Below are positions 12,098 through 37,231 of a stretch of 64,000 nucleotides of DNA, one piece after another (the first letter of the stretch is position 1; each line of letters begins with the position of its first letter). Location of the stretch: the sequence record OR805292.1. The stretch is one strand, 5' to 3'. The notes under the pieces were generated by a model that ran no database searches, had not been told where the DNA came from, and saw nothing but the letters and a program-made list of their open reading frames with translations. The position numbers and the translations under genes are program-made.

Positions 12098-13189
12098 TTT
12101 ACTAGACTATATATGGTATTCTTTTGTATGATATACAACGACAGTTGGGAATTTAAATGCTTTTTACAGTTGCTGCAAAGCATGCAAAATAACGCATACG
12201 TAAACAGCACAAAACACGCGCATAATGCGTTGTTTGTGTGCTTTGTGTATACTGCACTACTATGCAAACTAGCATGCAAAATAACGCATTTTTGCAGCTA
12301 TAACGCTAGGGGTACGTATTCTTACAAATATAATAATTCGCTAGAATAATGTATATTTTTAAATTCTAAATTTAACCTATCTTATAATATACATTACGGA
12401 AATGTTACAATTAAAAATTTATTATCTCAGACTTTATGCACATTCAATCTTATAATACTATATTAAATACAAGTAAAAATATATTTATTGATTTGCAAGT
12501 AACATTTAACAAACGGAGTATATTTTAATGGTCTCTGTTAATATACCGTTAATTGTATCTAATAAAATATATAAAATGGAATTTGAATATAGCAAGGATG
12601 ATGTGTTATATTTGTGTATGTATAGTGACAATAATACATATCTACATAATATAATAGTCAATACAGAATTCTCTATGCTTTTTGTTCAATGTATGGGTAA
12701 AACTATACCACTAGAATCAATATTATATATCCAGTCAAATATAAAAACAATAAGTGTGACTGATGACTATGGCTGTATAATCCTACAAAACGATACATTT
12801 TGTTTATGTACTGGATATTTTCAGGAAAAAGTTAAATTTTTTGCAGATTAAATATGAATGAACAAATTATATTATGTTTCCAAGCATGCGTTAATAAATT
12901 TGCCTACTTAGGAAACCCAAAAATAAGATTATTTGGAATCGGTAAAAGTGTCAAGATATCTGCACGGAATTATAACAATATGGATATAGGTTCGTTTAGC
13001 AGTAATTTGAAATTTTTATTATATATCGATAGTATCCAAGATATTGGAATATATGATGAAAATTTTATATTTTATATATCAATAAATTCAGACGAAATAT
13101 CATTTTTGGGTTCTACAGGTACAGCACAAGTAGATACTGAACTTGGAATTACTATATTCTTTACCCGCCCTAAAACATAATCTTAAATT

Positions 13190-13447
13190 ATGATATTCAT
13201 TGCACAGCGACTGTTACATAAAATAACATATAATAAAAATGCAATACTGTTCGGTTGTTTTAACAGTGGATATTTTTTAATTAATAGAAGAAGTGGTATT
13301 GGATTCTTATTTACAGATATATGTATGAAACGAATAAAATGCATTTATTTCATATTATATATTTCGCGTAATACCAATACTATAGGCAAAGATGCAATCT
13401 ATATTAAAGATTTAGAACTATTAAGAGCAATGCACATACTTCGATGA
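13190..13447 (+). CDS. LQ two-repeat family member
   Basis: IFIAQRLLHKI ... ILYISRNTNTI. Confidence 0.55.
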   Translation: MIFIAQRLLHKITYNKNAILFGCFNSGYFLINRRSGIGFLFTDICMKRIKCIYFILYISRNTNTIGKDAIYIKDLELLRAMHILR

Positions 13448-13752
13448 ATATAAATTTAATACTGATACTTCAACGATGTACGTCTGTAATAGGAGGATTC
13501 CAACGCGGCGGCGCAACACTTATTCATATTTATAGTGATTTTAATTTATCTGCTATAATGACGTTATACAAAAGAAGATGCAAATGCATTGTATTTACTG
13601 ACATTTTGTTTAACGACATTAAAGACGGTTCTATAGATATCATTATCTATATAAGTAAGAATGCAAACCTAATACACGATAAATTTGCCTACATAGACAC
13701 ATCTGTTACAGATGAATCTTCTGTTCCTTTACACGATATGACAGGAATATGA
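13444..13752 (+). CDS. LQ two-repeat family member
   Basis: LILILQRCTSVI ... IIYISKNANLI. Confidence 0.6.
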   Translation: MNINLILILQRCTSVIGGFQRGGATLIHIYSDFNLSAIMTLYKRRCKCIVFTDILFNDIKDGSIDIIIYISKNANLIHDKFAYIDTSVTDESSVPLHDMTGI

Positions 13753-14234
13753 ATAATCCTATATATAATTTTATACTTGCAAGACGAATATGCAAACGGT
13801 ATAGAATAAAATTCAATCCATTTGTAAAATTAGATACAGGAAGTTTACAAATAGATAACGCAGATAAAATAACAGTTAGCGTAAATGTATTTAATAGTAA
13901 TTTTATACCTATATTTTGGCACGAAATAGGGCATTATATTCATCATACATTAGTTAATTATAAAATTTATTTAGATTACTATACTCCTATTTGTCCTACA
14001 CACGGGTATCTTTTATATAATAAGACACAAGATTTTTATAAATGTCTTTATTCTGAAATGTTTGCTAGTAGATTTGCACTAAAGGTGTGCGGAGCAAAAC
14101 ATAAGAAATACCTCATAAAATGTTTTCACACATACACTTCTGCTGCATTTAAAACCAACATCGCCAGCCAATCTAAATTTACAAGATTTGTAGATTTTGT
14201 AGAAAAACTTTCTAGAAAATTAGATAGATATTAA
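13749..14234 (+). CDS. HExxH metallopeptidase-like protein (ImmA/IrrE-like)
   Basis: FWHEIGHYIH followed by a downstream E (SEMFASRFA). Confidence 0.55.
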   Translation: MNNPIYNFILARRICKRYRIKFNPFVKLDTGSLQIDNADKITVSVNVFNSNFIPIFWHEIGHYIHHTLVNYKIYLDYYTPICPTHGYLLYNKTQDFYKCLYSEMFASRFALKVCGAKHKKYLIKCFHTYTSAAFKTNIASQSKFTRFVDFVEKLSRKLDRY

Positions 14235-14570
14235 TATATGAACACTTATGATTATATAAGACAGAATAACGACAAAATAGTTACATTTGAAACTATATTA
14301 CATATAAGCAGTAGAAGTAGAGTAATAAGACTGCATTACAATTTTAGTTATATTTTACAACGAATGTCTCTAATTCTACCAGATAAACGTGGGAACCTGG
14401 TAATTAAATACTTTTATTACCGAAGTGTATGAAATATATTTCGTGTATATTATATAACTTTCTGTTCACTACTTATATAAAAGTACATTCCAAAAATATT
14501 GTAAATATAGTATAGTTTTCATATAAAAGTATGCGTATAATTTGCACATATAACGCAATAACGCAGCAAC

Positions 14571-14704
14571 AAACAAAACGTAATAAAAAATGTTGCAATA
14601 GCTTAAAAGTTTTAGTATAATAAGCACATAACAACGCAATACAGTTTACAAACAAAACGTAATAAAAAATGTTGCAATAGCTTAAAAGTTTTAGTATAAT
14701 AAGC
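14571..14704 (+). promoter_or_regulatory. Tandem duplicated sigma70 promoters driving the tRNA cluster
   Basis: Two identical ~55-bp units, period 79, each with TTGCAA-17-TATAAT (14593-14621 and 14672-14700). Confidence 0.9.
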
Positions 14705-14735
14705 GTATAATGCAGCATAGATAACAAGTTAAAAC

Positions 14736-14812
14736 CCCTCGGTAGCTCAGTTGGTTAGAGCGCGCGACTCATAATCGCTAGGTCACTGGTTCGAATCCAG
14801 TTCGAGGGACCA
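14736..14812 (+). tRNA. tRNA-CAT, Ile2 (lysidine) type, copy 1
   Basis: Full cloverleaf, GCGA-CTCATAA-TCGC arm typical of Ile2, acceptor CCCTCGG/TCGAGGG, encoded CCA. Confidence 0.88.
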
Positions 14813-14834
14813 ATTTTAAGATGTTGTGCTTTTA

Positions 14835-14919
14835 GCCCGAGTGGTGAAATTGGTAGACACAGGAGACTTAAAATCTCCCGCTTCGCAGCGTACCGGTTCG
14901 AGTCCGGTCTCGGGTACCA
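14835..14919 (+). tRNA. tRNA-Leu(TAA), copy 1
   Basis: GGAGA-CTTAAAA-TCTCC arm, long variable arm, CCA. Confidence 0.96.
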
Positions 14920-14969
14920 AACAAAAGATATAAATACTTAACAAGATAGGAAACTATTCTAAAATTAAA

Positions 14970-15045: not shown

Positions 15046-15071
15046 ATTACACTTTGTTGTATATTCAATAT

Positions 15072-15147
<76 letters not shown>

Positions 15148-15428: not shown

Positions 15429-16307
15429 AACTCCTACAAAAGGAACATATTATAGTATGTTCCTTTTTTATTATGATATTTTTATTATGAATGAAATAAT
15501 GCATATATCTGCCAACACATACGTAATAGAATATCGCGTATTAAACAAGTTAGTAGTCACTATAAAAAATAATAGATCTTTTACATTATGGGTACATTTT
15601 GATATCGGTACATTTTCTATGGCATGGAAATACAATGCAATATAGAATTAAAAAATGAAATACATTATTAATTTACAATACTCAACAGAAGTAATATATA
15701 TGCCGTGTTTCAACATAATATCGTTATGCGATAATAGATCTGTTACTATCCTTTCTATTACTATGATATTTAAGATAAGATACTATTTGCATCCGATGTT
15801 CCGTTATATTCTATAATACATAATATTTTTATTGTAACAAATACCAGAAGTGCTTAGATAATATATAGCAATTCTGTTTATTATCGATATTGCGGTATAC
15901 TTAGTATTTCTTATTAACCGTATTACATAGAATAAAGAATGGAAAAAATTTTAACTATTTCACATAAAACATTAATATGTGAATTGTCGTTATTAAAATT
16001 GTCGAAATCCATAGTTTGTGTTTATTCTGGCGAAATAGTATGGTATGCTCGGCTAGATAAGAATTGTTATGTTGTACGGATAAGATGATGATAATAATGA
16101 ACTGTATTTTTTCCTATTCGTACTATTTAGAACGCATCGTATGTCATGCAAAAATCTACAAAGGGTTTGTAGTCAGTAAAAATACTTTTTGTGAGAAATC
16201 CGTAATAGCTTTATACTTAATAAATAGTGGTAGTTATTTTCATAAATGTTATGTCGATCATTACTTAATTGTATAGATATATATATATATATATTTTAAT
16301 AAAATAG

Positions 16308-20522: not shown

Positions 20523-20702
20523 ATGACAATAGACGAATTTCTAGAACAATTAGATTGTGCATGTACTGACGGCAATTGTATATTTCGCCCATCGAATCGG
20601 AAAGGAATGGTAACTAACGGCGGTTGTAAGTGTCTGTCAGACAGAAATAAACACACTAATGTACTGAGGTATATTAATTTCTTAAAATCTAAAATAAAAT
20701 GA
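20523..20702 (+). CDS. Small Cys-rich protein (59 aa), below the track cutoff
   Basis: Translated by hand: MTIDEFLEQLDCACTDGNCIFRPSNRKGMVTNGGCKCLSDR...; fills the gap between two chained ORFs. Confidence 0.7.
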   Translation: MTIDEFLEQLDCACTDGNCIFRPSNRKGMVTNGGCKCLSDRNKHTNVLRYINFLKSKIK

Positions 20703-20913
20703 TAGATTACATCTTTAAATTGAGTTCCTATTGTTTAATTTTTATAGATTCATCACGCCATTATGGTGTACACTACGATCTGGCAGAATATTTTTCAGAC
20801 GGTTCTATATGGTATAAATGGTCTTACGAGACTACTTCGCACAACGATACTCAGTATAATAAAGGAAAATACACAAAAAGTTTTATATACTTAATGGAAG
20901 GAAAATATTCAGC

Positions 20914-21432
20914 ATGAAAGGGTATGATTTAATTAAAGAATATTATGGTACCCGGGTTGCTAAACGTTCCGGGATTCCGTTAATGAACCATATAGATGAA
21001 GGTCTAAAAATTTTAGATACAATAAATTCTTCATACGAAGTAAAAGAAGCATTTTGTTTACATCCTTTGCTTCAAAATAACGAAGAATTTGAAAATAACT
21101 ATGATTTAGTAGTAAGCACCGGCGGTCTGGTAACAAAAAGTATTCTTCTTGCAATGGAATATAGACATAAAGCAAATACATATTTGTGTAAAAAAGAAAC
21201 AGATCATTGGACAGTTGAATATGCATCTAAAAAAATAGGTCATATTATTCATCCTGTAAAAGAAATGCTAATAGCAGATAAGGTTCAAAATTTCAAAGAT
21301 TTTAAAATATATCATAAAGACACCCACAAAAGATCTCATCAGTTATCTAAATATTTTAAAAATTGGCTAACAATCTTAGAAATATCTGACGTCGACGCTA
21401 AAGATTTAGAACAAGTGTGTTATAAAGATTAA
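20914..21432 (+). CDS. Hypothetical protein, possible HD-like metal-dependent hydrolase
   Basis: NHIDEG, CLHP and LIADKVQN resemble the spaced H/D ligands of HD folds; not canonical. Confidence 0.45.
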   Translation: MKGYDLIKEYYGTRVAKRSGIPLMNHIDEGLKILDTINSSYEVKEAFCLHPLLQNNEEFENNYDLVVSTGGLVTKSILLAMEYRHKANTYLCKKETDHWTVEYASKKIGHIIHPVKEMLIADKVQNFKDFKIYHKDTHKRSHQLSKYFKNWLTILEISDVDAKDLEQVCYKD

Positions 21433-25165: not shown

Positions 25166-25833
25166 ACGTTTACTTCTAACAACGTTTGTTATTTCTATTC
25201 AAGCAAGGAATTATCATATAATACCATATGTCGGTATTAAAAATAAACTTGTGTTTATTTTATCTAGTAGCAAATGAATACTATAATAACGCTAAGTGCT
25301 TTGCAGGAAACAATACAAAGAGACGAATGGTCAGACCGCTATCATTTTGTTATTAAAGATAGGTATGGTAGTGATATATTGTATTGTATAGAATACGAAA
25401 ATTCATTACAGTCGTGGTTTATAGACTATACATATAACAATAGTTTGATATACTTAGATATATTTAAAATTCAGCTATTAACACAAAAAATATCATCTTA
25501 TACTAGTAACAGAACAGTAGTATTATTATCGGACAGTATCTCGAATATAATTTTATATTACGAAATAGCAAATGATAGTATTAGTAGTAAAAATTATTCA
25601 TCTGAAATAGTATTAGCATAAATGAATGTATTTTAGTATAAGACTATAACACATCATTTGCATTTAAATTCCAAACTAAAACTGTAACTTCTTTATGTAT
25701 ATTCTTATTATTGCAATTCTAGTAAAATCTGTACAACTATTACTGATTTAGATGTACAGGACAAAGAACAGCAAAATGCTTGACTATCCATTCGTGTTAG
25801 GTTAATTTAACAAAATTACATAAGGTATTTCAA

Positions 25834-26166
25834 GTGTTTATCATTAAATTACAAAGCAATTGTGACAAAATAGAAATAGATAACTCAAAATACAATTACG
25901 GGTTTTTTATTGTTAACTCAGAAAACATGAAAGTATTCCATTATAGTAACAAAGAATCGTCTTTGTATTCTATGTTTGCAAAAAATCTACATATCAATGT
26001 ATTTTTGGTGTCTACCTTGTGTTGTATTATATGTTTCGACTATCCTACTTTATACTTAGAAATGGAATCAAACCGTGCAGTAGCATTAGGTATAAATCCA
26101 TGTTTCTTAAATATAGATGTACAAGGTTCTCGGTTCCATAATTGGGATCCGGTGTGTTTTGTATAA
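25834..26166 (+). CDS. LQ family-like protein
   Basis: FIIKLQSNCDKI N-terminus. Confidence 0.5.
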   Translation: MFIIKLQSNCDKIEIDNSKYNYGFFIVNSENMKVFHYSNKESSLYSMFAKNLHINVFLVSTLCCIICFDYPTLYLEMESNRAVALGINPCFLNIDVQGSRFHNWDPVCFV

Positions 26167-27312
26167 ACATGTGATATAATTTGTGTTTAGTTATTTCTTA
26201 AATAAGGTATTGAAATGAAGGAAAACAATATACTAGAAATGCAAGCAGGATGCTCAAACGTAACTGTTATAGGTAACTGTGTTATAAGTATAGAAGGATT
26301 ATATGACAAACCGACAAAAACATTAAACTTTTTTGTAAGATATAATTTAAACCATGATTCGGAATACTTATCATACATTTACACATTTAAAAATGATATA
26401 TGTGTACTGTCTTTATCTAGTAAATGTTTTATGATTAAAATGGCCTCAGAGATGTATTATAAAACTAGATCTGTATGTATTATTAATAATAAAGGAAACG
26501 GATTGTTATATAGTTACAAAAATCACACATGGGCTCGGACATGTATTCTAATATAGAAAAAATTTATTATATTTCTAAAAATACACGAAGTATAAAGGTA
26601 ATGGACCATACAATCACTATATGGTCGTTATATATTTCACCTAATATTACTATAATTTTATGGGCAACTAATTTAACTACAGGATTATGTACCTTAAAAT
26701 ATAAAAATGAATTCAAAATAGATTTATTTAAATTAGTCAATGCAGTGTATTATATAGAAAACAAATATAGAAACAGCACATATGTATTAAATGATGTATT
26801 GCACAATACTATATGCTCTGTGGGTATATTAAGACCCCGTATTGCAGATGAAGTATATTGCAGATATAGAATATCGTATGTCAGCTAACATTACATATAT
26901 TGTATCAATTACTGCTAGATGCACATCTATATCTGAAGATGCGTATAGTGATTTCGTTACATTTTGTATAGCAGATGTATTTGGTAATTATATAATTCAA
27001 TATATAACAGAACGCAACAATAGGTTTATAGCTGTATATGAATATACATTTTCTACAATATGATATGTCTGATTCAAGTATAGTATGCAATATAACAAGA
27101 TATTCGTATACAATAAGACTGAGTAATTATACATCGTTTCATTTTGTTATATCCGGAATGGGTAGGCCTATAACAAAAGTTGTATCCAAGATACTGTGTA
27201 ATCCTATTCATATAATAGATGTGTGTAATGTTTCGCATCATGCAAAAGATACGATTTTTTCGTACAATGACACTCAATTACACAGTTCTTTGCATTTGTT
27301 TACTATATCATT

Positions 27313-27852
27313 TTGGAAGTTAAAAGCATATACTATGATAAACGTATCCTACATAATATGATATTTCAAAAACCATTTATAGAATTGAATAGTATCCCAG
27401 ATTACACTCATCCGGGCGGATTTGCATACCAACGAAAAAATCATATACACGAAGGCGTAGACCTTTATTGTAAAAATAAAGAACCTGTGTTTACAATGTT
27501 AACGGGTAAAGTAGTTAATATAATAAAAGATTTTACAGGTCCGGGTTGTGGAACACCTTGGTGGAATAAAACAAGTGCAATAGTAATAGAAGACGTATTT
27601 GGTGTATGGGTATACGGCGAAATATTAGTAGGAAATTGGATTAACATAGGAGATACTGTACCAGCTGGAACATGTATCGGCAGAGTAGAACAAGTGTTAA
27701 AAAAGAACAAAGGACGTCCTATGTCTATGCTTCACGTAGAACGATATACAAAAGGAACTACAAATTCTATTGGATTATGGCAATTAAACACCAGTAGACC
27801 CGAAAATTTATTAGATCCAACACCTTTGTTACGGCGTATCATAAATGAATAA
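27313..27852 (+). CDS. M23-family metallopeptidase
   Basis: HEGVD (HxxxD), VYGEI, IGDTVPAGTCIGRV, MLHVE; the HxH motif appears as LH. Confidence 0.8.
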   Translation: MEVKSIYYDKRILHNMIFQKPFIELNSIPDYTHPGGFAYQRKNHIHEGVDLYCKNKEPVFTMLTGKVVNIIKDFTGPGCGTPWWNKTSAIVIEDVFGVWVYGEILVGNWINIGDTVPAGTCIGRVEQVLKKNKGRPMSMLHVERYTKGTTNSIGLWQLNTSRPENLLDPTPLLRRIINE

Positions 27853-28623
27853 TATATTATATATTCAGAATTTTATAAGAAGTAGAAAATTAGTAGCAGA
27901 ATACGGATGTATAGTTACCATTAATGATATTACAGGAGCTAGAGAATTTACAGCATATCATCTCAATAACTGGCATAATTGTTCATTTATATCATATAAT
28001 AATTGCAGTATAGATATTATTGCATTATGTAACTATACACACACGATAGTATGTGGATCAGATAATGCAGGTTTTATAATAAAAAATAATAACAGAAATA
28101 TTCTACTGTCAGTAGTTTCTAACAAGACGTCATATTCGTCTTGTTATTCATCTTCTGTAATTATAAATATTTCTGTTTTATTATAAAATGAATTTAATAT
28201 TTTGTATAGCTAGCATTGATAATATGCAAATAGGTATAGGCCGGTCAATCGGAGATATAAACAATATAATATATATTCGAATTAGCCCCTATAATGATAT
28301 AATCAAATATATAACAGAAGTAAAATATGGTAAAACAGTATCACTTATGTTAAATCTCGATATATCAGTATTTAAAGAATTATTTATTTTTATTTTGTCA
28401 TGTAAATGTAAACACATCACTGAACTAAGAATATACAATAAAGTAGTATTTTATTTTTATTCTGATACCAGAAGATCTTTAACAGATTTGTTATATTACA
28501 TAGGTCGGTGACAGTACATTTACAGAAAAATATAATATCTTATGTATTATTCATTATAAAAACTCTGTTGTGTTATTAAGTGTTGTATGTTAGTGTGCAA
28601 GTTAATTAAATGCGGAACACCAA

Positions 28624-28917
28624 ATGGATATTATTCTTTTTATATCAAATAATACATACTATATAATATCAACGAGTAATAGCACATTCTTATTATACAG
28701 ATTTGATCAAAAATGTATCTATGTTGTAACAAAAAATCTTAATTCACACCCGGTAGTGATAGACGACGGAAGTAATGGCTGGGGGACAATATATGAGATT
28801 CCAGCACTAGTTCAGTTTTACACAGATATTTTTAAATTTTCTGTGCATCACGAATTAATTCAAATATATGTGCTTACAAAAGTAGGTCAATTTTTCTCTA
28901 AGATTGTTACTTACTAA
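28624..28917 (+). CDS. LQ family-like protein
   Basis: MDIILFISNNTYYI ... LVQFYTDIF. Confidence 0.55.
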   Translation: MDIILFISNNTYYIISTSNSTFLLYRFDQKCIYVVTKNLNSHPVVIDDGSNGWGTIYEIPALVQFYTDIFKFSVHHELIQIYVLTKVGQFFSKIVTY

Positions 28918-29459
28918 TTAATTGTACAATACATAGGCAATTTAATGGACAATATATTTTATATTTCGTACGAGATAGCTGTCCAGTGTTCTAATATAAC
29001 TACATTTTATTTAATTAATAAACACAATAGAGTATTTTATGCAATACGTTCAGCCACGGGATACCCAATCGACATTTTCGATTTTGATTGGAAACAAAAA
29101 ATCTTATTAACGTCTAAATATTGTAATAAGCTTTTATTTATTATTAGTAGAGAAAAGATACAGGTAACTACTACTAAGTTAAAGATATTTTATTGTCTTA
29201 GTAACGTATCTACTAAATCGGATCAAGTTACACTATGAATATCATACCATTAATTTTAATTAGTGTATACTAGTTATTGTGACACTATTAAATATGTCAA
29301 TTAGATAAAATAAATTATTAATGAAAAATCTATTTCCTACAGGATGCATATTTAATATATTGGTATTATCTTATCACACAGATACAATATATACTGTATG
29401 TTACTCAGATTGTCGTGTTATTGCACTAAACAGTTATTATACATACTATATACCTTTAA

Positions 29460-29726
29460 ATGACTAAATTAATACTTACAATTTCTATTAATACCAAACA
29501 GATAGCATTATTAAACGATGTTGTGCGTTTTCAAAATTATAATAAAGTGGTATACTTTATAAATTTTTTATCTAAAACTAAGTCATTAATTGTTGTAGAC
29601 GAATTAATAACAGATATTTTTATTATCATTTATATAAGTAAAAATTGTTCCGAAATTTATGTCACCCCCAGATATGCTTTTATACGCAATTGCAATGGCG
29701 TTATCATGACTAGTTGTGTTAATTAG
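29460..29726 (+). CDS. LQ two-repeat family member
   Basis: LILTISINTKQI ... IIYISKNCSEI. Confidence 0.6.
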   Translation: MTKLILTISINTKQIALLNDVVRFQNYNKVVYFINFLSKTKSLIVVDELITDIFIIIYISKNCSEIYVTPRYAFIRNCNGVIMTSCVN

Positions 29727-29740
29727 GATAACTATACTTA

Positions 29741-30034
29741 ATGAAATATGATTTTATATTACATATAAGTAATAACACAAATTGTATTATATTCGACACA
29801 AGTATTACCTTTGTTGGCAATAAAGGTATATTCTTTTATAAAATAATACCAATACACTTGCATGGTATGTGTAATTTTCCTTATATAGATAACAGTTGGT
29901 CAAACTATATTTCATTACCTATAATTATACAATATTATACAAATAAACTGGTATATTTACCGTCTATTATACTTTTTCGTCAAAATAAATCTAATATATC
30001 AGCAGATACTGTATTTCGTACAAATATGTTATGA
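29741..30034 (+). CDS. LQ two-repeat family member
   Basis: DFILHISNNTNCI ... IIIQYYTNKL. Confidence 0.6.
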   Translation: MKYDFILHISNNTNCIIFDTSITFVGNKGIFFYKIIPIHLHGMCNFPYIDNSWSNYISLPIIIQYYTNKLVYLPSIILFRQNKSNISADTVFRTNML

Positions 30035-30312
30035 ACGATGAATTAATACTATTGTTAAGTAAAGAGACTTATATAACTTCATTTTCTCATAACTGTGTAG
30101 ACTTGTTCAGCGCTGCTGGAATCATATTTTATAGCATATCTATACCATACATGGGTTCCCGTGCTGCTAGCAGAATACATCATTTATATTTGTGTGTGTT
30201 TACACTATCTCCTTTTATAATACAATCATTTTGCCGTGTAATATTCGATAATAAGTATACAATTTGCATATCATATAACGGTACACTTATATGGAAAGGT
30301 CTTTACCAATAA
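30031..30312 (+). CDS. LQ two-repeat family member
   Basis: LILLLSKETYI ... FIIQSFCRVI. Confidence 0.55.
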   Translation: MNDELILLLSKETYITSFSHNCVDLFSAAGIIFYSISIPYMGSRAASRIHHLYLCVFTLSPFIIQSFCRVIFDNKYTICISYNGTLIWKGLYQ

Positions 30313-30381: not shown

Positions 30382-30687
30382 ATGAATATTATCATTAACA
30401 TTCAAGCATCAACATCCGAAATCTTCTTTGACACAGACTGTATCTCGTTAATGACTAGCTTAAGCGGTTATGTTCTTTCGATAAACCGAAGAACAGGAAA
30501 AGGCGCAGTTGTACTTCATAACATAAAGTTAGATCCCATCTATCGTATCCTACTATTACAGCACACAACTGCATCACTTGTTGTATGGGGTGCTATAGAC
30601 ATTAAAGTATCATTTAAAGATATAGACGATGAATACATTTTCCTTGCTATAGGAAGAAGATATTATCACGGCGAATGGTTAAAATAA
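30382..30687 (+). CDS. LQ two-repeat family member
   Basis: IIINIQASTSEI ... ILLLQHTTASL. Confidence 0.6.
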   Translation: MNIIINIQASTSEIFFDTDCISLMTSLSGYVLSINRRTGKGAVVLHNIKLDPIYRILLLQHTTASLVVWGAIDIKVSFKDIDDEYIFLAIGRRYYHGEWLK

Positions 30688-31299
30688 TTCTGACTATGCA
30701 TAAAATTTATTATGACGAAATTTTAGAAATATCTAATAAAGCTAGATTAATTGTAATTTACTCTGGCATATGTTCTATATACACAAAACCTTCTGTTTAT
30801 TATAATGTAAATTATAATTTTTATAGTAATCCATTTAGTTGTTGGGATAGGGCAGTATTTATAGCATCTAAACAATGCGGACGCATAATATTCACTAATA
30901 ACCGGGTGCGTATATTAACTGATAAAAAAATAATGTGGTATTATCATTATCTATAGGTATAGATCGAAAAATGGTATATAAAATACCGAATGACAAGTGT
31001 ATGTTGTTAATATTTCTGAGTAGTATCACTGATACTATATCCATAGAAATCAGTTTTAGAAAAAGAATTAGAAAATGTTTGTACACACTAAAAATATACA
31101 AAGGTGATAACATTTGCATATTTATAAATGGCGTACTATTATTTAAAAAAGTTATATGTAACGATATGATAATTCCTATTTTGATACAATCAGTTACACG
31201 TTCAATATCAATGCATAACGACTTCTTAGAAGTATTTTCTAACAAATATTATTTGACGTTATTTAGAAAACTGACATAGTCTTAAATGGGCAAAAATGC

Positions 31300-31551
31300 A
31301 TGATTGTTATACTTCTTTCACACTTTACACATGAACTAAATGCAGAGTTTAATGAATTAGAACTTACTGTGTATGGTAATAGATTAGCGCAAATATATCC
31401 AACAGCATTTATAGATACTAACATTCTATGGCATTATATGAGTGAATCTGATTTCTTACTATTTTATATTTCTAATAATGCAAAAACGATAAAATTAAAC
31501 CATTCACACCGAATATTATTATATAACTCTCCCATACCTCACTATATTTAA
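31300..31551 (+). CDS. LQ two-repeat family member
   Basis: VILLSHFTHEL ... LFYISNNAKTI. Confidence 0.55.
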   Translation: MIVILLSHFTHELNAEFNELELTVYGNRLAQIYPTAFIDTNILWHYMSESDFLLFYISNNAKTIKLNHSHRILLYNSPIPHYI

Positions 31552-31936
31552 AAAGACAAGTATGTGAACTATCATTTAAATAGTTGTTGTACAGAAACTA
31601 CATTATTAAACTCTTTTAATGAGCAGGTTAATGTCCATCTAAACCCTATGTGCAACCTACCATTTATTATATCAAGTAATTCCCACAAACTAATCTACGG
31701 ACAGTATTTTAACAATACAAGAGGTCCAGGCATATACATTGCTAATATAAATGGATTTGTGTTTCTATGCTCAGTTGCTACTATTTCTAATTTTCGAATG
31801 TGTTTTAGTATGCTTAACGAAATAGATCCTTTGTATATACAATACAAATGCGATTCGATAAAAACAATAATCACACTTACGTATTATGGACTAAATGTCA
31901 ATTCATTACTTAATACAATGTTATGTAAAGAATATT

Positions 31937-32221
31937 ATGAATTTAATACTTGAATTAGTAAGAAACACAAGTAAAATCATACCGCATGATGGTCTAAATG
32001 CTGTTAGATTTATTCTTGTAAATGCCCATTATATAAAAATAGCATCTTTTTGTTTATCATTTTCTACATGGACCTGCCAGACATTTTTAAGAATAAACCA
32101 GTTTCAAATGTCAGAATCCACGTTAGTTATTATATCTAATAAAATAAAGAAGATTAAAAGAATGGAAAAATCATACGCTTTAGTTTTTGACGAATCATAT
32201 ATCCGGTTGAAAATCGAATGA
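31937..32221 (+). CDS. LQ two-repeat family member
   Basis: MNLILELVRNTSKI ... LVIISNKIKKI; start moved to the internal ATG. Confidence 0.55.
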   Translation: MNLILELVRNTSKIIPHDGLNAVRFILVNAHYIKIASFCLSFSTWTCQTFLRINQFQMSESTLVIISNKIKKIKRMEKSYALVFDESYIRLKIE

Positions 32222-32472
32222 TAATACATATCTCACATTTAACAGATAAAATAAATGCATATTCTAAATATATAATCGTCACTAATAAAACTAACGAAAT
32301 TATACTTTGCCATTACATATATAACCAAACTAAAATTTACATTAACAAAATATTACCAAGTATCGATGTAATCTGTTACATTCAACATAACACAAAAACT
32401 ATTAGTTATCCCATTGTAAATAGCCATTTTCTATCGTATCCATACCTTTGCAATAATGCCTTGGTTATATAA
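32218..32472 (+). CDS. LQ two-repeat family member
   Basis: IIHISHLTDKI ... ICYIQHNTKTI. Confidence 0.65.
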   Translation: MIIHISHLTDKINAYSKYIIVTNKTNEIILCHYIYNQTKIYINKILPSIDVICYIQHNTKTISYPIVNSHFLSYPYLCNNALVI

Positions 32473-32474: not shown

Positions 32475-32756
32475 ATGGATTTTATTTTCCTACTACAACA
32501 TAACACTTTTATTATATTATATCGTAATAGTATTATAGAATTATACACAGAAGACGAAAGTCCAGTAGTAGACATAGAAATATCAAATTCTATGTTCATA
32601 TATTATAGTATTTTTAATGACAAAACTACAATACTCTATCTACAACAAAATACACACACTATATATCAAGAATCATCAAATTCTTATTATATGATAAGAA
32701 TGAGAAATATGTACCATAGAGACGTTTATTATATTATAACACATGGACTATATTAA
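32475..32756 (+). CDS. LQ two-repeat family member
   Basis: MDFIFLLQHNTFII ... ILYLQQNTHTI. Confidence 0.7.
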   Translation: MDFIFLLQHNTFIILYRNSIIELYTEDESPVVDIEISNSMFIYYSIFNDKTTILYLQQNTHTIYQESSNSYYMIRMRNMYHRDVYYIITHGLY

Positions 32757-33027
32757 CCTTATCTCCGCAGAAGTAACTCAAATTAAAAAATCCACCCACG
32801 CTGGTTGGACCCGTCACGGCTTAACACTATATAACATACACAACCAACCTATAATAGAAATAAAGATCCAAAAAATAATATCCCGTGTATATGTGCGTGC
32901 AAACTACGATAAGTTGTGTAATGAAATCTGTATTCTTCATATACAAAGTCAAACAACTTTAATATCTACCACACGGAACTCACTAGTAATATTTACTTCC
33001 CACTATATAGTTCACTCTATCATATGA
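32743..33027 (+). CDS. LQ two-repeat family member
   Basis: MDYINLISAEVTQI ... ILHIQSQTTLI. Confidence 0.7.
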   Translation: MDYINLISAEVTQIKKSTHAGWTRHGLTLYNIHNQPIIEIKIQKIISRVYVRANYDKLCNEICILHIQSQTTLISTTRNSLVIFTSHYIVHSII

Positions 33028-33320
33028 ACCTAATATATACACTACAACATAAAACTAGATATATATCCCAATTTGATACTAATTTTGATACTACTTATCG
33101 TTTAATTAACTCAGATAGAAAATGCTTTTATCTTATAACACGCAAGAACAAAAAGACCATAGTAGACATAGACTATAATGTCTTTAATGATATTTTCGGT
33201 ATATTACATTTACAGTCTAAAACACATATACTACAACGTTCATACTACCTAATAAAAATATATGATGTATGTACGGATTTAATATTTTTTATATACATCC
33301 ATAACCATAACCATAAATGA
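33024..33320 (+). CDS. LQ two-repeat family member
   Basis: MNLIYTLQHKTRYI ... FGILHLQSKTHIL. Confidence 0.7.
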   Translation: MNLIYTLQHKTRYISQFDTNFDTTYRLINSDRKCFYLITRKNKKTIVDIDYNVFNDIFGILHLQSKTHILQRSYYLIKIYDVCTDLIFFIYIHNHNHK

Positions 33321-33598
33321 AATTTATTATAACATTACAATCATACACAACTAGAATACAGTTTCTAACTAATGATTTTATATTGTATTCTGATAGAAAT
33401 AAATTATTAGAATTAGGTATATACAATAACAAATTCAACTGTTACATACATATCAATAATTTTAATAATAACAATATAATCATGTGTTATCTTCAGCATA
33501 TAATTTATACAATACACATTCATCCCTTTGTTTTATCTATGTGTAATAGTAATTGGTTATCAGTTAATACAAAATGTTATTCAAGAAGACTTTATTAA
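33317..33598 (+). CDS. LQ two-repeat family member
   Basis: MKFIITLQSYTTRI ... MCYLQHIIYTI. Confidence 0.7.
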   Translation: MKFIITLQSYTTRIQFLTNDFILYSDRNKLLELGIYNNKFNCYIHINNFNNNNIIMCYLQHIIYTIHIHPFVLSMCNSNWLSVNTKCYSRRLY

Positions 33599-34106: not shown

Positions 34107-34491
34107 CCCTAACATCACCGAAGAAAGAAGGACCAAAATTTTGGAAATCTTGCTCTATAGGTCCCATTCATTTTCTTCCCAGTTACATTTATATTCTTTC
34201 CATTTCTAACCATTTTTATAGATTTTTTTTGGAAAAATCCGGTTTCTGCTATATAGGGACCTTCTTATAAAATATAAGTTCTCTTTCAATAAAAAATATT
34301 TTTTTTGAAAATTTCCAATTCTTGCTATATAGGCCGGTTTCATTATATATTCCCGTTTGCATAACATATACGGAATATAGTATGCTATACGTATATAAAC
34401 CGTGACTCTAGTCAACTCACTTACTGTACGCTTGTTAGCTATTAGATATAATTCCATTTCGTAGTATAACGTATATACAGGAAAACTATTT

Positions 34492-34761
34492 ATGGATCTG
34501 ATACTATTTCTTCAACATAATACTGTAGAGATGGACTATAGTGAATGGTACGTTCGTCTTAACAACAAGAATGAAAAGCATATAGCTATGATTACAGGTA
34601 ACGGTCTTAGACTGTATTATAGAAATATCAATTGCTTACTTGGTATTCTTCATTTACAATACTGTAATTATAAATTTTTCATGCATACGGACAATTATAT
34701 TTCTTTTACTTTTGCTAATAATAATAGGTTTGTACATGAAATACATGTTGATTTGAAATAA
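34492..34761 (+). CDS. LQ two-repeat family member
   Basis: MDLILFLQHNTVEM ... LGILHLQYCNYKF. Confidence 0.7.
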   Translation: MDLILFLQHNTVEMDYSEWYVRLNNKNEKHIAMITGNGLRLYYRNINCLLGILHLQYCNYKFFMHTDNYISFTFANNNRFVHEIHVDLK

Positions 34762-35086: not shown

Positions 35087-35371
35087 ATGGACTTAATATT
35101 ATTATTTCAGTCTCGTTGTTGTAAGATTTGGTATTCAGATTATATTATAGATATGATCGACTATAGTGATTATACTATAGTATCGTTATTACGCCCGCCG
35201 AATGGGCGTATGTATGCCTATTGTTCGTGTAATAATATAAACAACGAAATTAGTATAATGCATTTGCAGAATAGCATACATTCATTACAAATAAGTTATA
35301 GTACCCGTTCTATAATGTGTCGTATGACTAATGTGTATGAAGATCTAATTCAATATATTTGTATACTTTAG
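35087..35371 (+). CDS. LQ two-repeat family member
   Basis: MDLILLFQSRCCKI ... ISIMHLQNSIHSL. Confidence 0.7.
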   Translation: MDLILLFQSRCCKIWYSDYIIDMIDYSDYTIVSLLRPPNGRMYAYCSCNNINNEISIMHLQNSIHSLQISYSTRSIMCRMTNVYEDLIQYICIL

Positions 35372-35373
35372 TA

Positions 35374-35649
35374 ATGTATTTTATCTTGTTTATACAGAAA
35401 TTGTGTTGTTCGATTAGAAGGGCTTCGCACGGATTTGATATTTTTAATACAAATGAAGTAGCATATTCATTAATAGATCATAATGGTTTCAGTATGAAAC
35501 ATTTCGTTTCATACTCTGTTATAAATGATGTAATAGGAATTATACATCTACAAGTGCATACAAATAAGTTTTATTTTCTTCATGAAAAACATCAAATGGA
35601 TATGATTTGTTTTCTAGATAGTAAAGGCGGTCATTTTTTTAGTTTATAG
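35374..35649 (+). CDS. LQ two-repeat family member
   Basis: MYFILFIQKLCCSI ... IGIIHLQVHTNKF. Confidence 0.7.
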   Translation: MYFILFIQKLCCSIRRASHGFDIFNTNEVAYSLIDHNGFSMKHFVSYSVINDVIGIIHLQVHTNKFYFLHEKHQMDMICFLDSKGGHFFSL

Positions 35650-35661
35650 AGGACGGAATTT

Positions 35662-35925
35662 GTGCTATTAATATTAATGCTTCAATGTAATACCGAATGG
35701 ATTCTTTATACTGATTGTGAAATTCGACTTGTTCTGCCAGATTATAATACGTTATATCGTTTTCTAATTCAGAAACAGAAAATTAATGGGTATCTAAATT
35801 GCCATGCTAGTAATGACATTGTAGGTATGTTTTATTTACAGTACAATTGCGATACTATATCATTTGCTAGATTTGATGAATTTATGATACTAAACCACAA
35901 TGGCATAATAATTTTTGGCTGGTGA
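35662..35925 (+). CDS. LQ two-repeat family member
   Basis: MLLILMLQCNTEWI ... VGMFYLQYNCDTI. Confidence 0.7.
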   Translation: MLLILMLQCNTEWILYTDCEIRLVLPDYNTLYRFLIQKQKINGYLNCHASNDIVGMFYLQYNCDTISFARFDEFMILNHNGIIIFGW

Positions 35926-36224
35926 CTAGCATGGATATTATATTAATCCTTAGCAGTGAAGTTATAAGAATACAAGGTTGTTTTTATGATATAGAAACTT
36001 TACAAATAAGGTTCTTCAATAAATACGACTCAATATATTTTTGTAATAAAATGGGAGGATTTGTTAACTATAAAACATTTCCTAATGAACTACTAAGTAT
36101 AATTCATTTGCAGCAGAACACACACAGGTTTGTAACACACGGTAAATGTATATTTTTTGATAGTGTGGATTTTATTTCTATTCACTGGGAGACTTTGTTT
36201 GACACAGAAGAATACGTATATTGA
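35922..36224 (+). CDS. LQ two-repeat family member
   Basis: MDIILILSSEVIRI ... LSIIHLQQNTHRF. Confidence 0.7.
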   Translation: MTSMDIILILSSEVIRIQGCFYDIETLQIRFFNKYDSIYFCNKMGGFVNYKTFPNELLSIIHLQQNTHRFVTHGKCIFFDSVDFISIHWETLFDTEEYVY

Positions 36225-36465
36225 TATGAATTATATATTACTAATTAGTAACCAGTCTAAATATATTTCGCTGAAGGCGCTTGGATTAACTGTAAAAACA
36301 CGTGATTCAAGGTTAACTCATTATATTATATTTTAAATATGAACGAAGAATATGATATATTGTATTTGTCTATCAATACTATGCAAATAACATTTCATTT
36401 TTCAGTATATTGTTTTTATGATAAAACTCGTAGTATTATATATTGTCAATAAGACAGAAATATAA

Positions 36466-36780
36466 ATGGATTTAATATTAACACTTCAACATAAAACTGT
36501 GCTAATATCGAAGTTTGGTGCATTATTTGTATTTCAAAATATAAACAGTGATACTATATTTTGTTTGGATATAGGTAGACATGTATATTATTTTGAAATA
36601 ATATTCAGGTTATATAATAATAAGAATGGCATGGTGTATTTGCAACATGCCATTAATTCTATTAAGTTTACCTTTAGTTTACAATATCATACAATTCGTG
36701 GATATTCTAGTATACCATCTATATATATGTATGATAAAAAATATGCTATTGTACACGTACCATATGTTAGGAATACTTAA
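36466..36780 (+). CDS. LQ two-repeat family member
   Basis: MDLILTLQHKTVLI ... GMVYLQHAINSI. Confidence 0.7.
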   Translation: MDLILTLQHKTVLISKFGALFVFQNINSDTIFCLDIGRHVYYFEIIFRLYNNKNGMVYLQHAINSIKFTFSLQYHTIRGYSSIPSIYMYDKKYAIVHVPYVRNT

Positions 36781-37076
36781 TGGATCTTATATTATACATT
36801 CAGTACAGTGCTCATAGAATAGAAACTGTTTATAAATCATATCTATTATATAATAAACATTCGCTTTATTACAGACTGTCTGTATATAAGAGATTATTGA
36901 TACCATCAGGTAGTAAATCATATGCAAGGGCTTCGGCTGAATATTCTGCTATTGCTGACAGAATAGGAATGATACACCTACAATCGAAAACACACGTAAT
37001 ATTATTTGTTATAGACAGTATGTGCATTCACGACAAATCGTATCAAACACTCCATTATATTATATCAAGGTCATAA
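36780..37076 (+). CDS. LQ two-repeat family member
   Basis: MDLILYIQYSAHRI ... IGMIHLQSKTHVI. Confidence 0.7.
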   Translation: MDLILYIQYSAHRIETVYKSYLLYNKHSLYYRLSVYKRLLIPSGSKSYARASAEYSAIADRIGMIHLQSKTHVILFVIDSMCIHDKSYQTLHYIISRS

Positions 37077-37231
37077 TGTCCATAAGTTTTATATTGAAAA
37101 TTCAACGATATACTTCTATTATAGAAATAGTTTCATATAGTAATATAAGATTTTGTAGTTTTCGTCAGTATCCTTTTTATAATGTAACAAATGTAATATA
37201 TGAAATAATTCCACCATGCAGCAAATGTTGA
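37076..37231 (+). CDS. LQ family member, short or truncated
   Basis: MSISFILKIQRYTSII; only the first repeat precedes the stop. Confidence 0.5.
   Translation: MSISFILKIQRYTSIIEIVSYSNIRFCSFRQYPFYNVTNVIYEIIPPCSKC

Follow-up and report, generated by a model that had tools for sequence, protein, structure and literature searches.

A head-to-tail array of small one- and two-unit proteins specific to PA5oct-like jumbo phages

Pseudomonas phage Cassandra, a PA5oct-like jumbo phage of the genus Wroclawvirus, carries a tandem series of about 50 genes whose very small products contain one or two copies of a unit of about 50 residues. Analysis confirms that this LQ-type small-protein family is genuine; it is so far undescribed and is specific to the PA5oct-like lineage. 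The window, the whole stretch of 64,000 nucleotides that was analysed, corresponds to bases 124001-188000 of record OR805292.1 (100% identity). Every CDS from 12.5 to 41 kb of the window is annotated as 'hypothetical protein'. The genes follow one another in the same orientation on the strand transcribed early, in DNA of 25-29% G+C; the array adjoins the terminal-repeat boundary and extends across the start of the terminal repeat (~39 kb). The preferred explanation, of middling confidence, is that tandem duplication long ago, confined to this lineage, expanded a set of small modular cytoplasmic accessory proteins.

The motif pattern proposed in an earlier, sequence-only reading matches 26 times on the + strand (17 times within 28-36 kb), versus 2.8 +/- 1.7 times in residue-shuffled frames and twice on the - strand. 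When 9 clear members were used to build an HMM, 10 further ORFs scored above every one of 7,665 decoys, shuffled or reversed. In leave-one-out analysis, 20 of 20 members (84-107 aa) beat all 300 of their own shuffles, with z from 5.4 to 26.5; members therefore score better than shuffled AT-biased ORFs, the comparison on which the sequence-only reading had staked the family. These members are as follows, with leave-one-out HMM scores in bits and motif positions in residues.

12528..12851, + strand: family member, 107 aa; 18.2 bits, z 9.0; unit motif at 64
13190..13447, + strand: family member, 85 aa; 21.2 bits; motif at 52
13444..13752, + strand: family member, 102 aa; 22.4 bits; motif at 64; N-terminal pattern match
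28624..28917, + strand: family member, 97 aa; 14.7 bits; motif at 1; omega 0.16
29460..29726, + strand: family member, 88 aa, two units; 26.4 bits; motifs at 3 and 53
30382..30687, + strand: family member, 101 aa, orthologue of PA5oct gp450 (EST35_0450); 23.4 bits; motifs at 1 and 56
30971..31279, + strand: family member, 102 aa, the weakest; 10.9 bits, z 5.4; internal motif
32218..32472, + strand: core member, 84 aa, two units; 25.5 bits; motifs at 1 and 49
32475..32756, + strand: core member, 93 aa, two units; 47.4 bits; motifs at 1 and 52; variants 21 nonsynonymous versus 1 synonymous
32743..33027, + strand: core member, 94 aa, two units; 30.2 bits; motifs at 1 and 62
33024..33320, + strand: core member, 98 aa, two units, structure model 1; 46.6 bits; motifs at 1 and 57
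33317..33598, + strand: core member, 93 aa; 49.4 bits; motif at 1
34492..34761, + strand: core member, 89 aa, orthologue of PA5oct EST35_0002, the first + strand gene of the terminal repeat; 39.9 bits
34765..35070, + strand: core member, 101 aa; 45.3 bits
35087..35371, + strand: core member, 94 aa, structure model 2; 44.8 bits
35374..35649, + strand: core member, 91 aa, two units; 47.3 bits; motifs at 6 and 59 (ORF from 35359); omega 0.10
35662..35925, + strand: core member, 87 aa, two units; 41.0 bits; motifs at 1 and 55
35931..36224, + strand: core member, 97 aa, two units; 36.8 bits; motifs at 4 and 59 (ORF from 35922)
36466..36780, + strand: core member, 104 aa; 30.5 bits
36780..37076, + strand: core member, 98 aa, two units; 29.6 bits; motifs at 1 and 62

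Taken together, a further 16 ORFs of about 100 aa align with the family profile over 71 columns that cover both motifs (hhalign probability 91%, E 1e-6). With 20 ORFs from the leave-one-out HMM and these 16 from the group profile, the original estimate of about 24 was a fair count.

12854..13180, + strand: probable diverged two-unit member, 108 aa; unit motif at 70; group profile match
25274..25621, + strand: possible diverged member, 115 aa; group profile match only
25834..26166, + strand: probable diverged member, 110 aa; unit motif at 1; group profile match
26215..26556, + strand: possible diverged member, 113 aa; group profile match only
26541..26888, + strand: probable diverged member, 115 aa; unit motif near the N-terminus; group profile match
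27038..27361, + strand: possible diverged member, 107 aa; group profile match only
27845..28186, + strand: probable diverged member, 113 aa; unit motif at 1; group profile match
28188..28511, + strand: probable diverged member, 107 aa; unit motif at 66; group profile match
28945..29238, + strand: probable diverged member, 97 aa; unit motif at 1; group profile match
29741..30034, + strand: probable diverged member, 97 aa; unit motif at 3; group profile match
30031..30312, + strand: probable diverged member, 93 aa; unit motif at 4; group profile match
30675..30956, + strand: probable diverged member, 93 aa; unit motif at 13; group profile match
31300..31551, + strand: probable diverged member, 83 aa; unit motif at 52; group profile match
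31648..31953, + strand: probable diverged member, 101 aa as annotated; internal unit motif; group profile match
31937..32221, + strand: possible diverged member, 94 aa; group profile match only
40842..41153, + strand: possible two-unit member, 103 aa, closing the mini-gene array; N-terminal motif by eye; group profile match

Could the family be a composition artefact of AT-rich DNA, made of chance Ile/Leu/Asn/Ser-rich ORFs? The low G+C content and an isoleucine share of 14% of residues invite the idea, which has next to no probability: it is refuted by controls, since neither motif nor family reappears in shuffles that preserve composition, in ORFs of the - strand, or in the remaining 224 kb of this AT-rich genome.

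The proposed unit spans roughly 45-55 residues, with a short conserved motif at its start. An 18-residue unit HMM, trained on 13 N-termini only, re-finds the motif at residue 49-65 in 9 of the 13 training proteins, where a second copy near residue 55-65 had been proposed. Its hits beyond the training set number 34 on + strand ORFs and 1 on - strand ORFs, with about 2 expected, and the N-unit profile matches the C-half profile at P 7e-5. Among 60 units, position 4 is Ile in 88%; position 5 is Leu, Ile, or Phe in 87%; position 7 is Ile or Leu in 96%; position 8 is Ser (52%) or Gln (48%); position 11 is Thr (55%) or Cys (18%); and position 14 is Ile in 85%. The two-unit architecture holds for most members. 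The sequence-only reading had every member begin with the motif, but the genes starting at 12528, 13190, 30971, 31300, and 31648 have an internal motif only.

T4 internal proteins have in common a short N-terminal capsid-targeting sequence, and are packaged and ejected with the DNA. The array proteins, diverse and small and sharing mainly a short N-terminal motif, might by the same logic carry a targeting signal, a very unlikely reading: the motif recurs at residue 50-65, unlike a terminal signal. Prohead proteases of T4-type phages cleave at Glu, whereas the motif has Ser or Gln after its hydrophobic run. PA5oct-like phages are indeed distantly related to T4-type phages (PMC7318152), but none of the array's orthologues is annotated as structural, and mass spectrometry of the PA5oct virion found 93 proteins (PMC7318152).

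The extent originally given, to 37231, proved too short: the motif-bearing set continues to 41153. About 24 mini-genes at 37.1-40.8 kb were absent from the original list. These and other small ORFs with one motif are listed here; those of the array are read as putative single-unit family members.

14238..14432, + strand: small ORF, 64 aa, one unit motif; unit HMM
15457..15645, + strand: small ORF, 62 aa, one unit motif; unit HMM
15655..15816, + strand: small ORF, 53 aa, one unit motif; unit HMM and pattern match
15939..16088, + strand: small ORF, 49 aa, one unit motif; unit HMM
20699..20917, + strand: small ORF, 72 aa, one unit motif; pattern match, unit HMM weak at 9.7 bits
23010..23231, + strand: small ORF, 73 aa, one unit motif; unit HMM
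29321..29467, + strand: single-unit mini-gene, 48 aa; unit motif, leave-one-out 19.7 bits among minis
36226..36336, + strand: mini-ORF between two core members; unit motif in the ORF from 36157
36339..36452, + strand: single-unit mini-gene, 37 aa; unit motif, leave-one-out 21.5 bits among minis
37076..40845, + strand: mini-gene array, 23 annotated genes of 36-79 aa, most starting with the family motif

Within the array, the unit HMM hits the ORFs ending at 37231, 37823, 38007, 38146, 38725, 39286, 39717, 40497, and 40845. Leave-one-out analysis among the minis found 15 of 26 beating 300 shuffles. The link to the family consists of a motif of 16-25 columns only, at P about 1e-3 to 1e-4 (profile against profile, P 0.0016 over 16 motif columns). 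For the mini-genes, dN/dS is 0.35 in frame and, off frame, 0.79 and 0.94; ORFs are kept in 68 of 72 orthologues; and 3 nonsense changes were observed versus 11.3 expected.

Old tandem duplications gave rise to the genes, which are now about 25% identical in amino acids. Pairwise identity between paralogues is 25% at the median and 37% at most, and self-blastn of their DNA returns a single 75-nt match at 73% identity, agreeing with the original remark that extended DNA identity is absent. Evidence supports conservation of the protein, with the DNA not conserved. Information at codon positions 1, 2, and 3 is 0.58, 0.82, and 0.23 bit, versus 0.25 upstream, and codon choice at conserved residues tracks family-wide usage. 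Nonsense differences number 6, versus 29.4 +/- 5.1 expected (5-fold depletion; 0 of 2000 simulations as low), and 54 of 60 orthologue ORFs keep their length. Across 7 genomes, omega (dN/dS) between orthologues is 0.55 for the family, below neutral at P 2e-9. When orthologues are compared, six conserved motif positions differ in 3.3% of cases, versus 7.2% elsewhere in the protein (P 3e-4); out-of-class changes at the six amount to 1.3% (P 4e-9 against the rest). The variable motif positions change in 10.3%. The proposal of old duplications under protein-level selection is thus upheld.

The constraint is real, yet weak, and far from strict. Single-gene omega ranges from 0.10 to about 5; it is significantly below 1 in 8 of 17 members (lowest 0.10) and near 1 in several others, so some copies may be drifting. 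Neighbouring enzyme genes have a dN/dS of 0.063 at similar dS, an M23 peptidase control gives 0.08, and nonsynonymous divergence of the family is about 10 times that of the enzyme genes. Such figures would suit near-functionless proteins, whose translation protects long host-RNA-polymerase transcripts or whose DNA is dispensable filler, the motif being a relic. So would the loss of single genes, and the lack of a consensus sigma-70 promoter inside 19-46 kb. Coupled polycistron translation would likewise fit the Shine-Dalgarno-like core found before 12 of 60 genes only, and the overlap of nearly half the junctions. (At 25.3-41.2 kb, 27 of 59 junctions overlap and 17 more have gaps of 0-20 nt; overlaps are frequent, but just 9 are ATGA, and therefore the initial label of ATGA-type chaining was partly accurate.) Nevertheless, the near-functionless explanation is improbable: drift alone would erase a motif kept in about 60 units at such low identity, and both the stronger purifying selection on the six motif positions and the members with significantly low omega argue against it. 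Selection holds the ORFs open and the motif scaffold intact, with the remainder of the protein evolving about 10 times faster than the neighbouring enzyme genes.

Searched against 1.84 billion representative proteins, the family returns 18 hits, every one an orthologue in this phage group, and no relatives outside the genus; Cassandra's virus family contains a single genus. IMG/VR and the rest of the Cassandra genome (1,096 ORFs) yield no family hits. No member matches any Pfam family at E <= 0.001; PHROG gives no match; the family profile has no PDB sequence match at E <= 10; and no known anti-defence or host-takeover protein is matched. The suspicion that no recognised family applies is borne out. 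Each phage carries 20-21 members. Callisto and Paride have an extra, diverged second copy of the gene at 32475..32756, and one metagenome relative has a deletion of about 0.6 kb within the array; gain and loss of copies are still going on.

What might these proteins do? Early transcription in PA5oct comes almost exclusively from the array's strand, and early genes are plentiful in the terminal repeat (PMC7318152). The list of highly transcribed early genes comprises gp34-gp105 and gp450, the last a family member; gp2-gp33, the core members and mini-genes in the repeat, go unnamed there (PMC7318152). The most likely role is inferred to lie in host takeover or counter-defence, with the proteins acting as binders or otherwise interacting with the host. 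It fits the early strand, the terminal-repeat position, and early transcription of gp450, together with the roughly 10-fold dN, the copy-number change between isolates, and isoelectric points from 4.6 to 10. Diversified accessory proteins would be made in infection, a conserved scaffold showing variable surfaces to host or competitor targets. The first interpretation stands in part, as to an old, diverged family with two units in most members, protein-level conservation, and no known family. Mini-genes (36-62 aa) would contain one unit and genes of 84-115 aa two; therefore the two-unit proteins may be pseudo-dimers of the fold made by paired mini-proteins. The family is unusually hydrophobic (GRAVY +0.17, with the high isoleucine share), so solubility and independent folding are uncertain. 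A membrane-type hydrophobic segment occurs in few members (2 of 20).

Two independent AF2 models, both of low confidence (pLDDT 57.5 and 63.7 for models 1 and 2; pTM 0.40 and 0.47), place a helix on each motif and strands after it, a (helix plus strands) x 2 arrangement. The motif is accordingly drawn in these predictions as a short helix running into a small beta-meander, and the shared two-repeat fold suggested earlier agrees with both, at that low confidence. In a Foldseek search with model 2, the leading PDB hit is the C-terminal domain of T4 MotA (1kaf, 5jlt; E 0.022, probability 0.97; TM 0.46, alignment over 97 of 104 residues). The BFVD ranking is likewise headed by MotA-type proteins, the best a 215-aa protein (E 0.008); they include the 'Activator of middle period transcription' from phage Bp7 (E 0.13). 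The two-unit proteins could, then, be stand-alone MotA-like 'double wing' DNA-binding domains of varied specificities, e.g., modulators of phage or host transcription, and PA5oct infection does rely on host RNA polymerase (PMC7318152). This is doubtful. No fold match reaches E 1e-3; model 1 gives different weak hits (VOC/FosX-type, TM about 0.3); sequence support is absent, the family profile scoring P 0.39 when compared with the MotA domain; the empty Pfam search means that no member hits the MotA C-terminal family PF09158; and no MotA or AsiA homologue is detectable in Cassandra. Basic residues are also scarce, with K+R at 9% in family members versus 15% in the MotA domain. The MotA C-terminal domain consists of three helices interspersed with six strands (PMC2988021), and the helix and strand count of model 2 equals it; the T4 'double wing' is the best, sub-threshold lead to a candidate fold.

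A set of small ORFs in Pseudomonas phage Cassandra had been proposed, from the sequence alone, to form one expanded protein family, and the proposal is both confirmed and enlarged here. The suggested N-terminal motif pattern, coded as written, matches 26 times on the + strand, against 2.8 +/- 1.7 matches in residue-shuffled frames and 2 on the - strand; the + strand matches cluster at 28-36 kb. With an HMM built from nine obvious members, ten more ORFs outscored every one of 7,665 decoys, shuffled or reversed. Each of the resulting 20 members (84-107 aa, + strand, named by their start positions) beats all 300 of its composition-matched shuffles in leave-one-out tests, with z from 5.4 to 26.5. 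Neither the - strand ORFs nor the 1,096 ORFs in the other 224 kb of this AT-rich genome gave a family match. Amino-acid identity between paralogues has a median of 25% and peaks at 37%, and extended DNA identity is lacking, as originally stated: self-comparison of the DNA detects only one 75-nt match, 73% identical. Together, the HMM and shuffle controls and the paralogue divergence establish that the family is real and old, and that base composition does not explain it; the idea that AT-rich DNA merely gives the appearance of a family is refuted.

The members are modular. An 18-residue HMM made from 13 N-termini rediscovers the motif at residue 49-65 in nine of the 13, in register, which bears out the internal repeat claimed by the sequence-only reading. 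The same HMM made 34 non-training matches on + strand ORFs and one on the - strand, with about two expected. Iterated, with decoy thresholds recalculated every round, an HMM for the unit (a module of ~50 residues opening with the motif) converged on 60 units in 51 + strand ORFs; 58 of these, in 49 ORFs, fall between 12 and 41.2 kb.

Residues at the conserved columns of the unit
Column 4: Ile 88%
Column 5: Leu/Ile/Phe 87%
Column 7: Ile/Leu 96%
Column 8: Ser 52%, Gln 48%
Column 10: Asn 47%
Column 11: Thr 55%, Cys 18%
Column 14: Ile 85%

Outside the window, at Cassandra 199144-199519 (L006 11144-11519), two adjacent small + strand genes match the unit motif weakly at their N-termini (9.0 and 11.4 bits); elsewhere in the genome there are no other plausible candidates for single-unit outliers.

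Two further sets of genes join the list. Sixteen more ORFs of ~100 aa (12.8-32.2 kb, and 40.8 kb) each score below threshold individually; compared as a group with the family profile, they reach an hhalign probability of 91% (E 1e-6) over 71 columns spanning both motifs. Then there are the annotated mini-genes, 23 of them at 37.1-40.8 kb (36-79 aa), the majority of which open with the unit motif. With three similar genes elsewhere they form a looser family, in which 15 of 26 beat all shuffles (leave-one-out). The mini-gene profile matches the family profile over the motif only (P 0.0016, 16 columns), and the mini-genes match either half of the family profile at P 1e-4. Gene lengths in the array are about one unit or about two. 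We read the mini-genes as putative single-unit members because the motif is there and is strongly enriched locally; homology along the full length is not part of the argument. That they could be two-unit genes decayed to halves was considered and rejected: mini-gene omega (dN/dS) is 0.35, below that of the family, and 68 of 72 orthologue ORFs are intact.

Conservation of the motif lies in the protein, as had been claimed. Information at N-terminal motif sites is 0.58 bit for the first codon position and 0.82 bit for the second; the third, with 0.23 bit, is at the level of the upstream background (0.25 bit). Synonymous codons at the conserved Ile, Gln and Thr match family-wide usage. Codon-position information and self-comparison of the DNA both argue against a DNA-level repeat or promoter motif as the source of the conservation.

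Comparisons with the relatives PAC2, Callisto and PA5oct point the same way. Pooled dN/dS for the family is 0.47-0.49 in frame versus 0.66 and 0.83 in the two wrong frames; for the mini-genes it is 0.35 versus 0.79 and 0.94. Variant counts from seven genomes give an omega of 0.55, below neutral at P 2e-9. Nonsense differences number 6 in the family, where simulation gives 29.4 +/- 5.1 (0 of 2000 simulations were as low as 6), and 3 in the mini-genes, where 11.3 are expected (P 0.002). Length is kept in 54 of 60 orthologue ORFs of the family. Nevertheless, eight neighbouring genes with recognisable or longer products have a dN/dS of 0.063; since dS is similar (0.054-0.076), the gap reflects a tenfold higher dN in the family. 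Single-gene omega ranges from 0.10 and 0.16 to about 1 in three members. Gene 32475 carries 21 nonsynonymous variants versus 1 synonymous (P 0.057), and omega above 1 for this gene and its duplicate in relatives is suggestive, not significant (P 0.06-0.18).

Across the 11-residue motif window as a whole, dN/dS does not differ significantly from that of the rest of the protein (0.41 vs 0.48). Splitting the motif into conserved and variable columns resolved the comparison. Among close orthologues, the six conserved columns changed in 3.3% of comparisons (1.3% out of class) and the rest of the protein in 7.2% (P 3e-4; out-of-class changes, P 4e-9); the variable motif columns changed in 10.3%. One might suppose that the ORFs stay open only to let translation-coupled transcription proceed, or that they serve as filler, but this is contradicted by the ongoing selection on the motif columns and by omega values that descend to 0.10 in some members. 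Taken together, the information, dN/dS, nonsense and motif-column data indicate genes maintained as coding sequence, with a conserved scaffold and other positions that change fast.

The paralogues, with one or two units each, form a large group that is limited to a single genus. The region 29.0-37.5 kb is 100% identical to the Cassandra record OR805292.1, which places the window at bases 124001-188000 of that sequence. Ten further PA5oct-like jumbo phages, including PAC2, MIJ3, Paride, Deifobo, Ettore, Callisto, PA5oct, 30-2 and 30-3, match this region at 92-96% identity; all belong to Wroclawvirus, the sole genus of Arenbergviridae. A profile search of 1.84 billion representative proteins yielded 18 matches, all of them orthologues from PA5oct-like phages. 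Word-indexed protein searches likewise returned same-clade orthologues only, and an IMG/VR scan with a single member as query returned no relative. Full texts of papers on PA5oct-like phages were searched, and no mention of paralogues, duplications or gene families was found.

Within the genus, copies are turning over while the genes are kept open. PAC2 and PA5oct have 20 members each and Callisto 21, in conserved order. Callisto and Paride carry a second copy adjoining the 32475 orthologue, 90% identical in DNA and only 70% in protein; its omega is about 2, an excess not significant alone (P 0.11-0.18). Contig L011, from a public sequencing run (95% identical), has one ~0.6-kb deletion within the array that removes one member and affects two neighbours. 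Save for one younger pair, the paralogues are ancient (~25% identity), with no recent amplification. In phage 30-2 an extra annotated 90-aa gene (L008 4113-4385) lies beside the orthologue of member 34492, and the stretch at the repeat region is much longer and unannotated; this hints that copy number and repeat length vary further at the terminal-repeat boundary.

The array sits on the early strand at that boundary. The 39,080-bp direct terminal repeat of PA5oct starts at position 1 of its record, which aligns with window 34116, the approximate start inferred for the Cassandra repeat, and the array straddles this point. Genes EST35_0444-0460 (PA5oct locus tags; window 28.6-33.6 kb) close the unique part of the PA5oct genome; core members (EST35_0002-0010, 34.5-37.1 kb) and mini-genes (EST35_0011-0033) sit at the start of the terminal repeat. 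A 12-tRNA cluster is preceded by three further members, at 12.5-13.8 kb. The interval 25.3-41.2 kb holds 60 + strand genes, with 88% of the DNA coding. The claim that the genes are chained by ATGA-type overlaps stands in part: 27 of 59 junctions overlap, just 9 of them as ATGA. A Shine-Dalgarno-like core precedes only 12 of these 60 genes. No strict sigma-70 consensus promoter was found within 19-46 kb, and none lies inside the array; a looser scan was uninformative in this AT-rich DNA (196 matches vs 167 expected). An Rfam search matched only the 12 tRNAs. PA5oct infection requires host RNA polymerase, and its early transcription comes almost exclusively from the strand of the array (PMC7318152). 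Among the highly transcribed early genes, gp34-gp105 and gp450 are named and the remaining array members are unmentioned (PMC7318152). The gp numbers correspond to PA5oct locus tags, as the M23 peptidase gp441 shows, and member 30382-30687 is the orthologue of gp450.

Every CDS at 12.5-41 kb was deposited as 'hypothetical protein'. Annotation of the relatives adds few names: TilS, M23 peptidase, DksA/TraR, and some that are obviously spurious. In PA5oct and PAC2, the 48-aa mini-gene 39140-39286 (EST35_0023) was deposited as 'phosphoglucomutase', and the ~100-aa array gene 31937-32221 (EST35_0455) as 'CLIP-associating protein 1'; both names are implausible for products of such sizes and look like annotation carry-over.

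Several other features of the region deserve mention. The one large break in the + strand array (33650-34081) is occupied by tandem repeats whose periods are 90, 48, 22 and 16 nt. These repeats stop ~35 nt before the position matching PA5oct base 1 (34116) and may be related to genome-end formation. Their annotation as 'CRISPR' in Paride and Deifobo is probably a repeat-finder false positive, and the - strand ORFs at 33564-34167 consist of these repeats. The 12 tRNA genes (14736-18968) include a duplicated Met-Leu pair (a 210-nt DNA repeat, 14743-14922 vs 15224-15431); a 79-nt tandem repeat (14524-14704) adjoins the cluster, and the TilS gene (24554-25165) is nearby. Following the three members near the tRNAs, a 161-aa ORF (13749-14234) contains an HExxH motif and has a sub-threshold match to PF07737 (20.2 bits, cut-off 27.4); judged by sequence, it is likely a small zinc metallopeptidase. 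After the tRNA cluster and before the array come genes for a GDSL-type lipase/acylhydrolase (21494-22132; Pfam E 1e-7) and a DksA/TraR-type zinc-finger protein (22140-22469); purifying selection on both is strong, in contrast to the small genes around them. Finally, G+C-rich islands (0.44-0.51, in a phage of ~30% G+C) occur at 42000-44000, 50000-52000 and 62000-64000. ORFs 43206-43910 and 61898-62380 look paralogous, with similar N-terminal ~90 aa and Ala/Lys/Glu-rich tails, and ORF 51735-52049, in one of the islands, encodes an Ead/Ea22-like protein (Pfam E 5e-10). The island genes, inside the terminal repeat, were probably acquired horizontally.

What fold do the members adopt? Pfam and PHROGs hmmscan searches of 10 and then 50 members found nothing significant, in keeping with the original statement that no family was recognised; the same profiles gave the 50 members no significant match to described anti-defence or defence families. 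AF2 was run on two targets, members 33024-33320 (model 1) and 35087-35371 (model 2), with alignments of 20 and 50 sequences. Confidence is low (pLDDT 57.5 and 63.7; pTM 0.40 and 0.47, respectively). In both models each motif forms a short helix and strands come after it, so the proposed shared two-repeat fold is supported in outline, by models of low confidence. Foldseek gave no match at E <= 1e-3 in PDB (both models) or BFVD. In PDB, the top match of model 2, which has three helices and six strands, is the C-terminal domain of T4 MotA (1kaf, 5jlt; E 0.022, probability 0.97, TM 0.46); in BFVD, MotA-type proteins stand at or near the top (E 0.008 and 0.13), none reaching 1e-3. The MotA C-terminal domain comprises three helices interspersed with six strands (PMC2988021). 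This 'double wing' domain is likewise ~100 residues long, with the element count of model 2, and its source is, like Cassandra, a large virulent phage that uses host RNA polymerase.

The modelled fold thus offers a tentative lead to MotA-like DNA-binding proteins, rather than membership among them. Sequence gives it no backing: the family profile shows no similarity to the C-terminal domain of T4 MotA (P 0.39), the MotA C-terminal family PF09158 has no match among 50 members, the family profile has 0 matches at E <= 10 among PDB sequences, and tblastn against Cassandra returned neither a MotA nor an AsiA homologue. Moreover, MotA occurs in one copy and is an activator of two domains, of which the N-terminal one binds sigma; it partners with AsiA. 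The array, by contrast, comprises 20-36 stand-alone paralogues plus half-size genes, its members being single-domain proteins of 84-107 aa without these features. Composition neither favours nor counts against sequence-specific DNA binding: K+R is 9% and pI runs from 4.6 to 10 in the members, and the MotA domain itself has pI 7.0. Model 1 disagrees with model 2, giving weak VOC/FosX-type matches (E >= 0.03, TM about 0.3) that model 2 does not reproduce. The VOC superfamily (glyoxalase, FosX, bleomycin-resistance; paired beta-alpha-beta-beta-beta modules) resembles the members in two-module architecture and size; the members lack its metal-binding signature and any sequence or Pfam match to it. 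Membrane peptides were also considered and rejected: a hydrophobic 19-residue window exceeds 1.6 in only 2 of 20 members.

We envisage the array products as accessory proteins whose variable surfaces would engage diverse host or competitor targets, with single-unit proteins pairing so as to imitate the two-unit fold. An extended version, which we consider improbable, is a combinatorial repertoire in which the unit comes both as ~25 free half-proteins and as ~20-36 fused proteins, the halves pairing with their own kind or with one another to yield many pseudo-symmetric binders of host proteins or DNA, possibly 'double wing'-like. If true, a recognition system that is modular and diversifying would account for about a tenth of the phage genes. 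Dimer mimicry, should it underlie the one-unit and two-unit architecture, would make the array a clear natural case of a small symmetric domain undergoing gene fusion or fission.

Among candidates for phage therapy are the PA5oct-like phages; replication on dormant, antibiotic-tolerant Pseudomonas aeruginosa was the reason for isolating Paride and Cassandra (PMC10761892). More than 80% of their genes have no assigned function. About 50 'hypothetical' genes, roughly a tenth of the complement, now prove to be one modular family that occupies only a 29-kb block at the boundary of the terminal repeat, which converts dozens of orphan genes into a single question of fold and function and makes a family profile available to annotators. 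No other protein-coding part of these genomes evolves as fast as this block, a pattern usual for host-interaction genes.

The family is new, a lineage-specific multigene expansion in an accessory region of a large phage. Such expansions are already known; this one is notable for its size and its one-unit/two-unit modularity. The T4-type internal-protein locus encodes diverse small proteins with a common short N-terminal capsid-targeting sequence, and in at least one case a counter-defence role. Both it and the array are clusters of fast-evolving small proteins whose main common feature is an N-terminal motif of ~10 residues, which raises the possibility that array products are capsid-targeted internal proteins. 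This is contradicted on two counts: the array motif also occurs internally (residue 49-65), unlike the T4-type sequence, and the published virion proteome speaks indirectly against it, in that the 'structural protein' mark given in the PA5oct record to proteins detected by mass spectrometry (one published data set) is on none of the array's orthologues. The array motif also lacks the prohead-protease-site residue, column 8 being Ser or Gln in 100% of units, and the array is far larger than the T4-type locus.

Large eukaryotic DNA viruses carry terminal multigene families, or 'gene accordions'. The likeness is one of concept only: tandem paralogues near genome ends, copy-number turnover, and rapid protein evolution. 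Those viruses and their hosts are unrelated to Cassandra and its host, there is no sequence relation, and the array paralogues are ancient. Some large virulent phages, among them T5 with its pre-early region and SPO1 with its terminal-redundancy module, keep small early host-takeover genes clustered in long terminal repeats. The array resembles these clusters in lying in or beside a long direct terminal repeat, in its small, tightly packed genes on one strand, and in the early expression of the surrounding region. The genes of the T5 and SPO1 modules are not mutual paralogues, however, whereas the array is one unit multiplied about 60 times.
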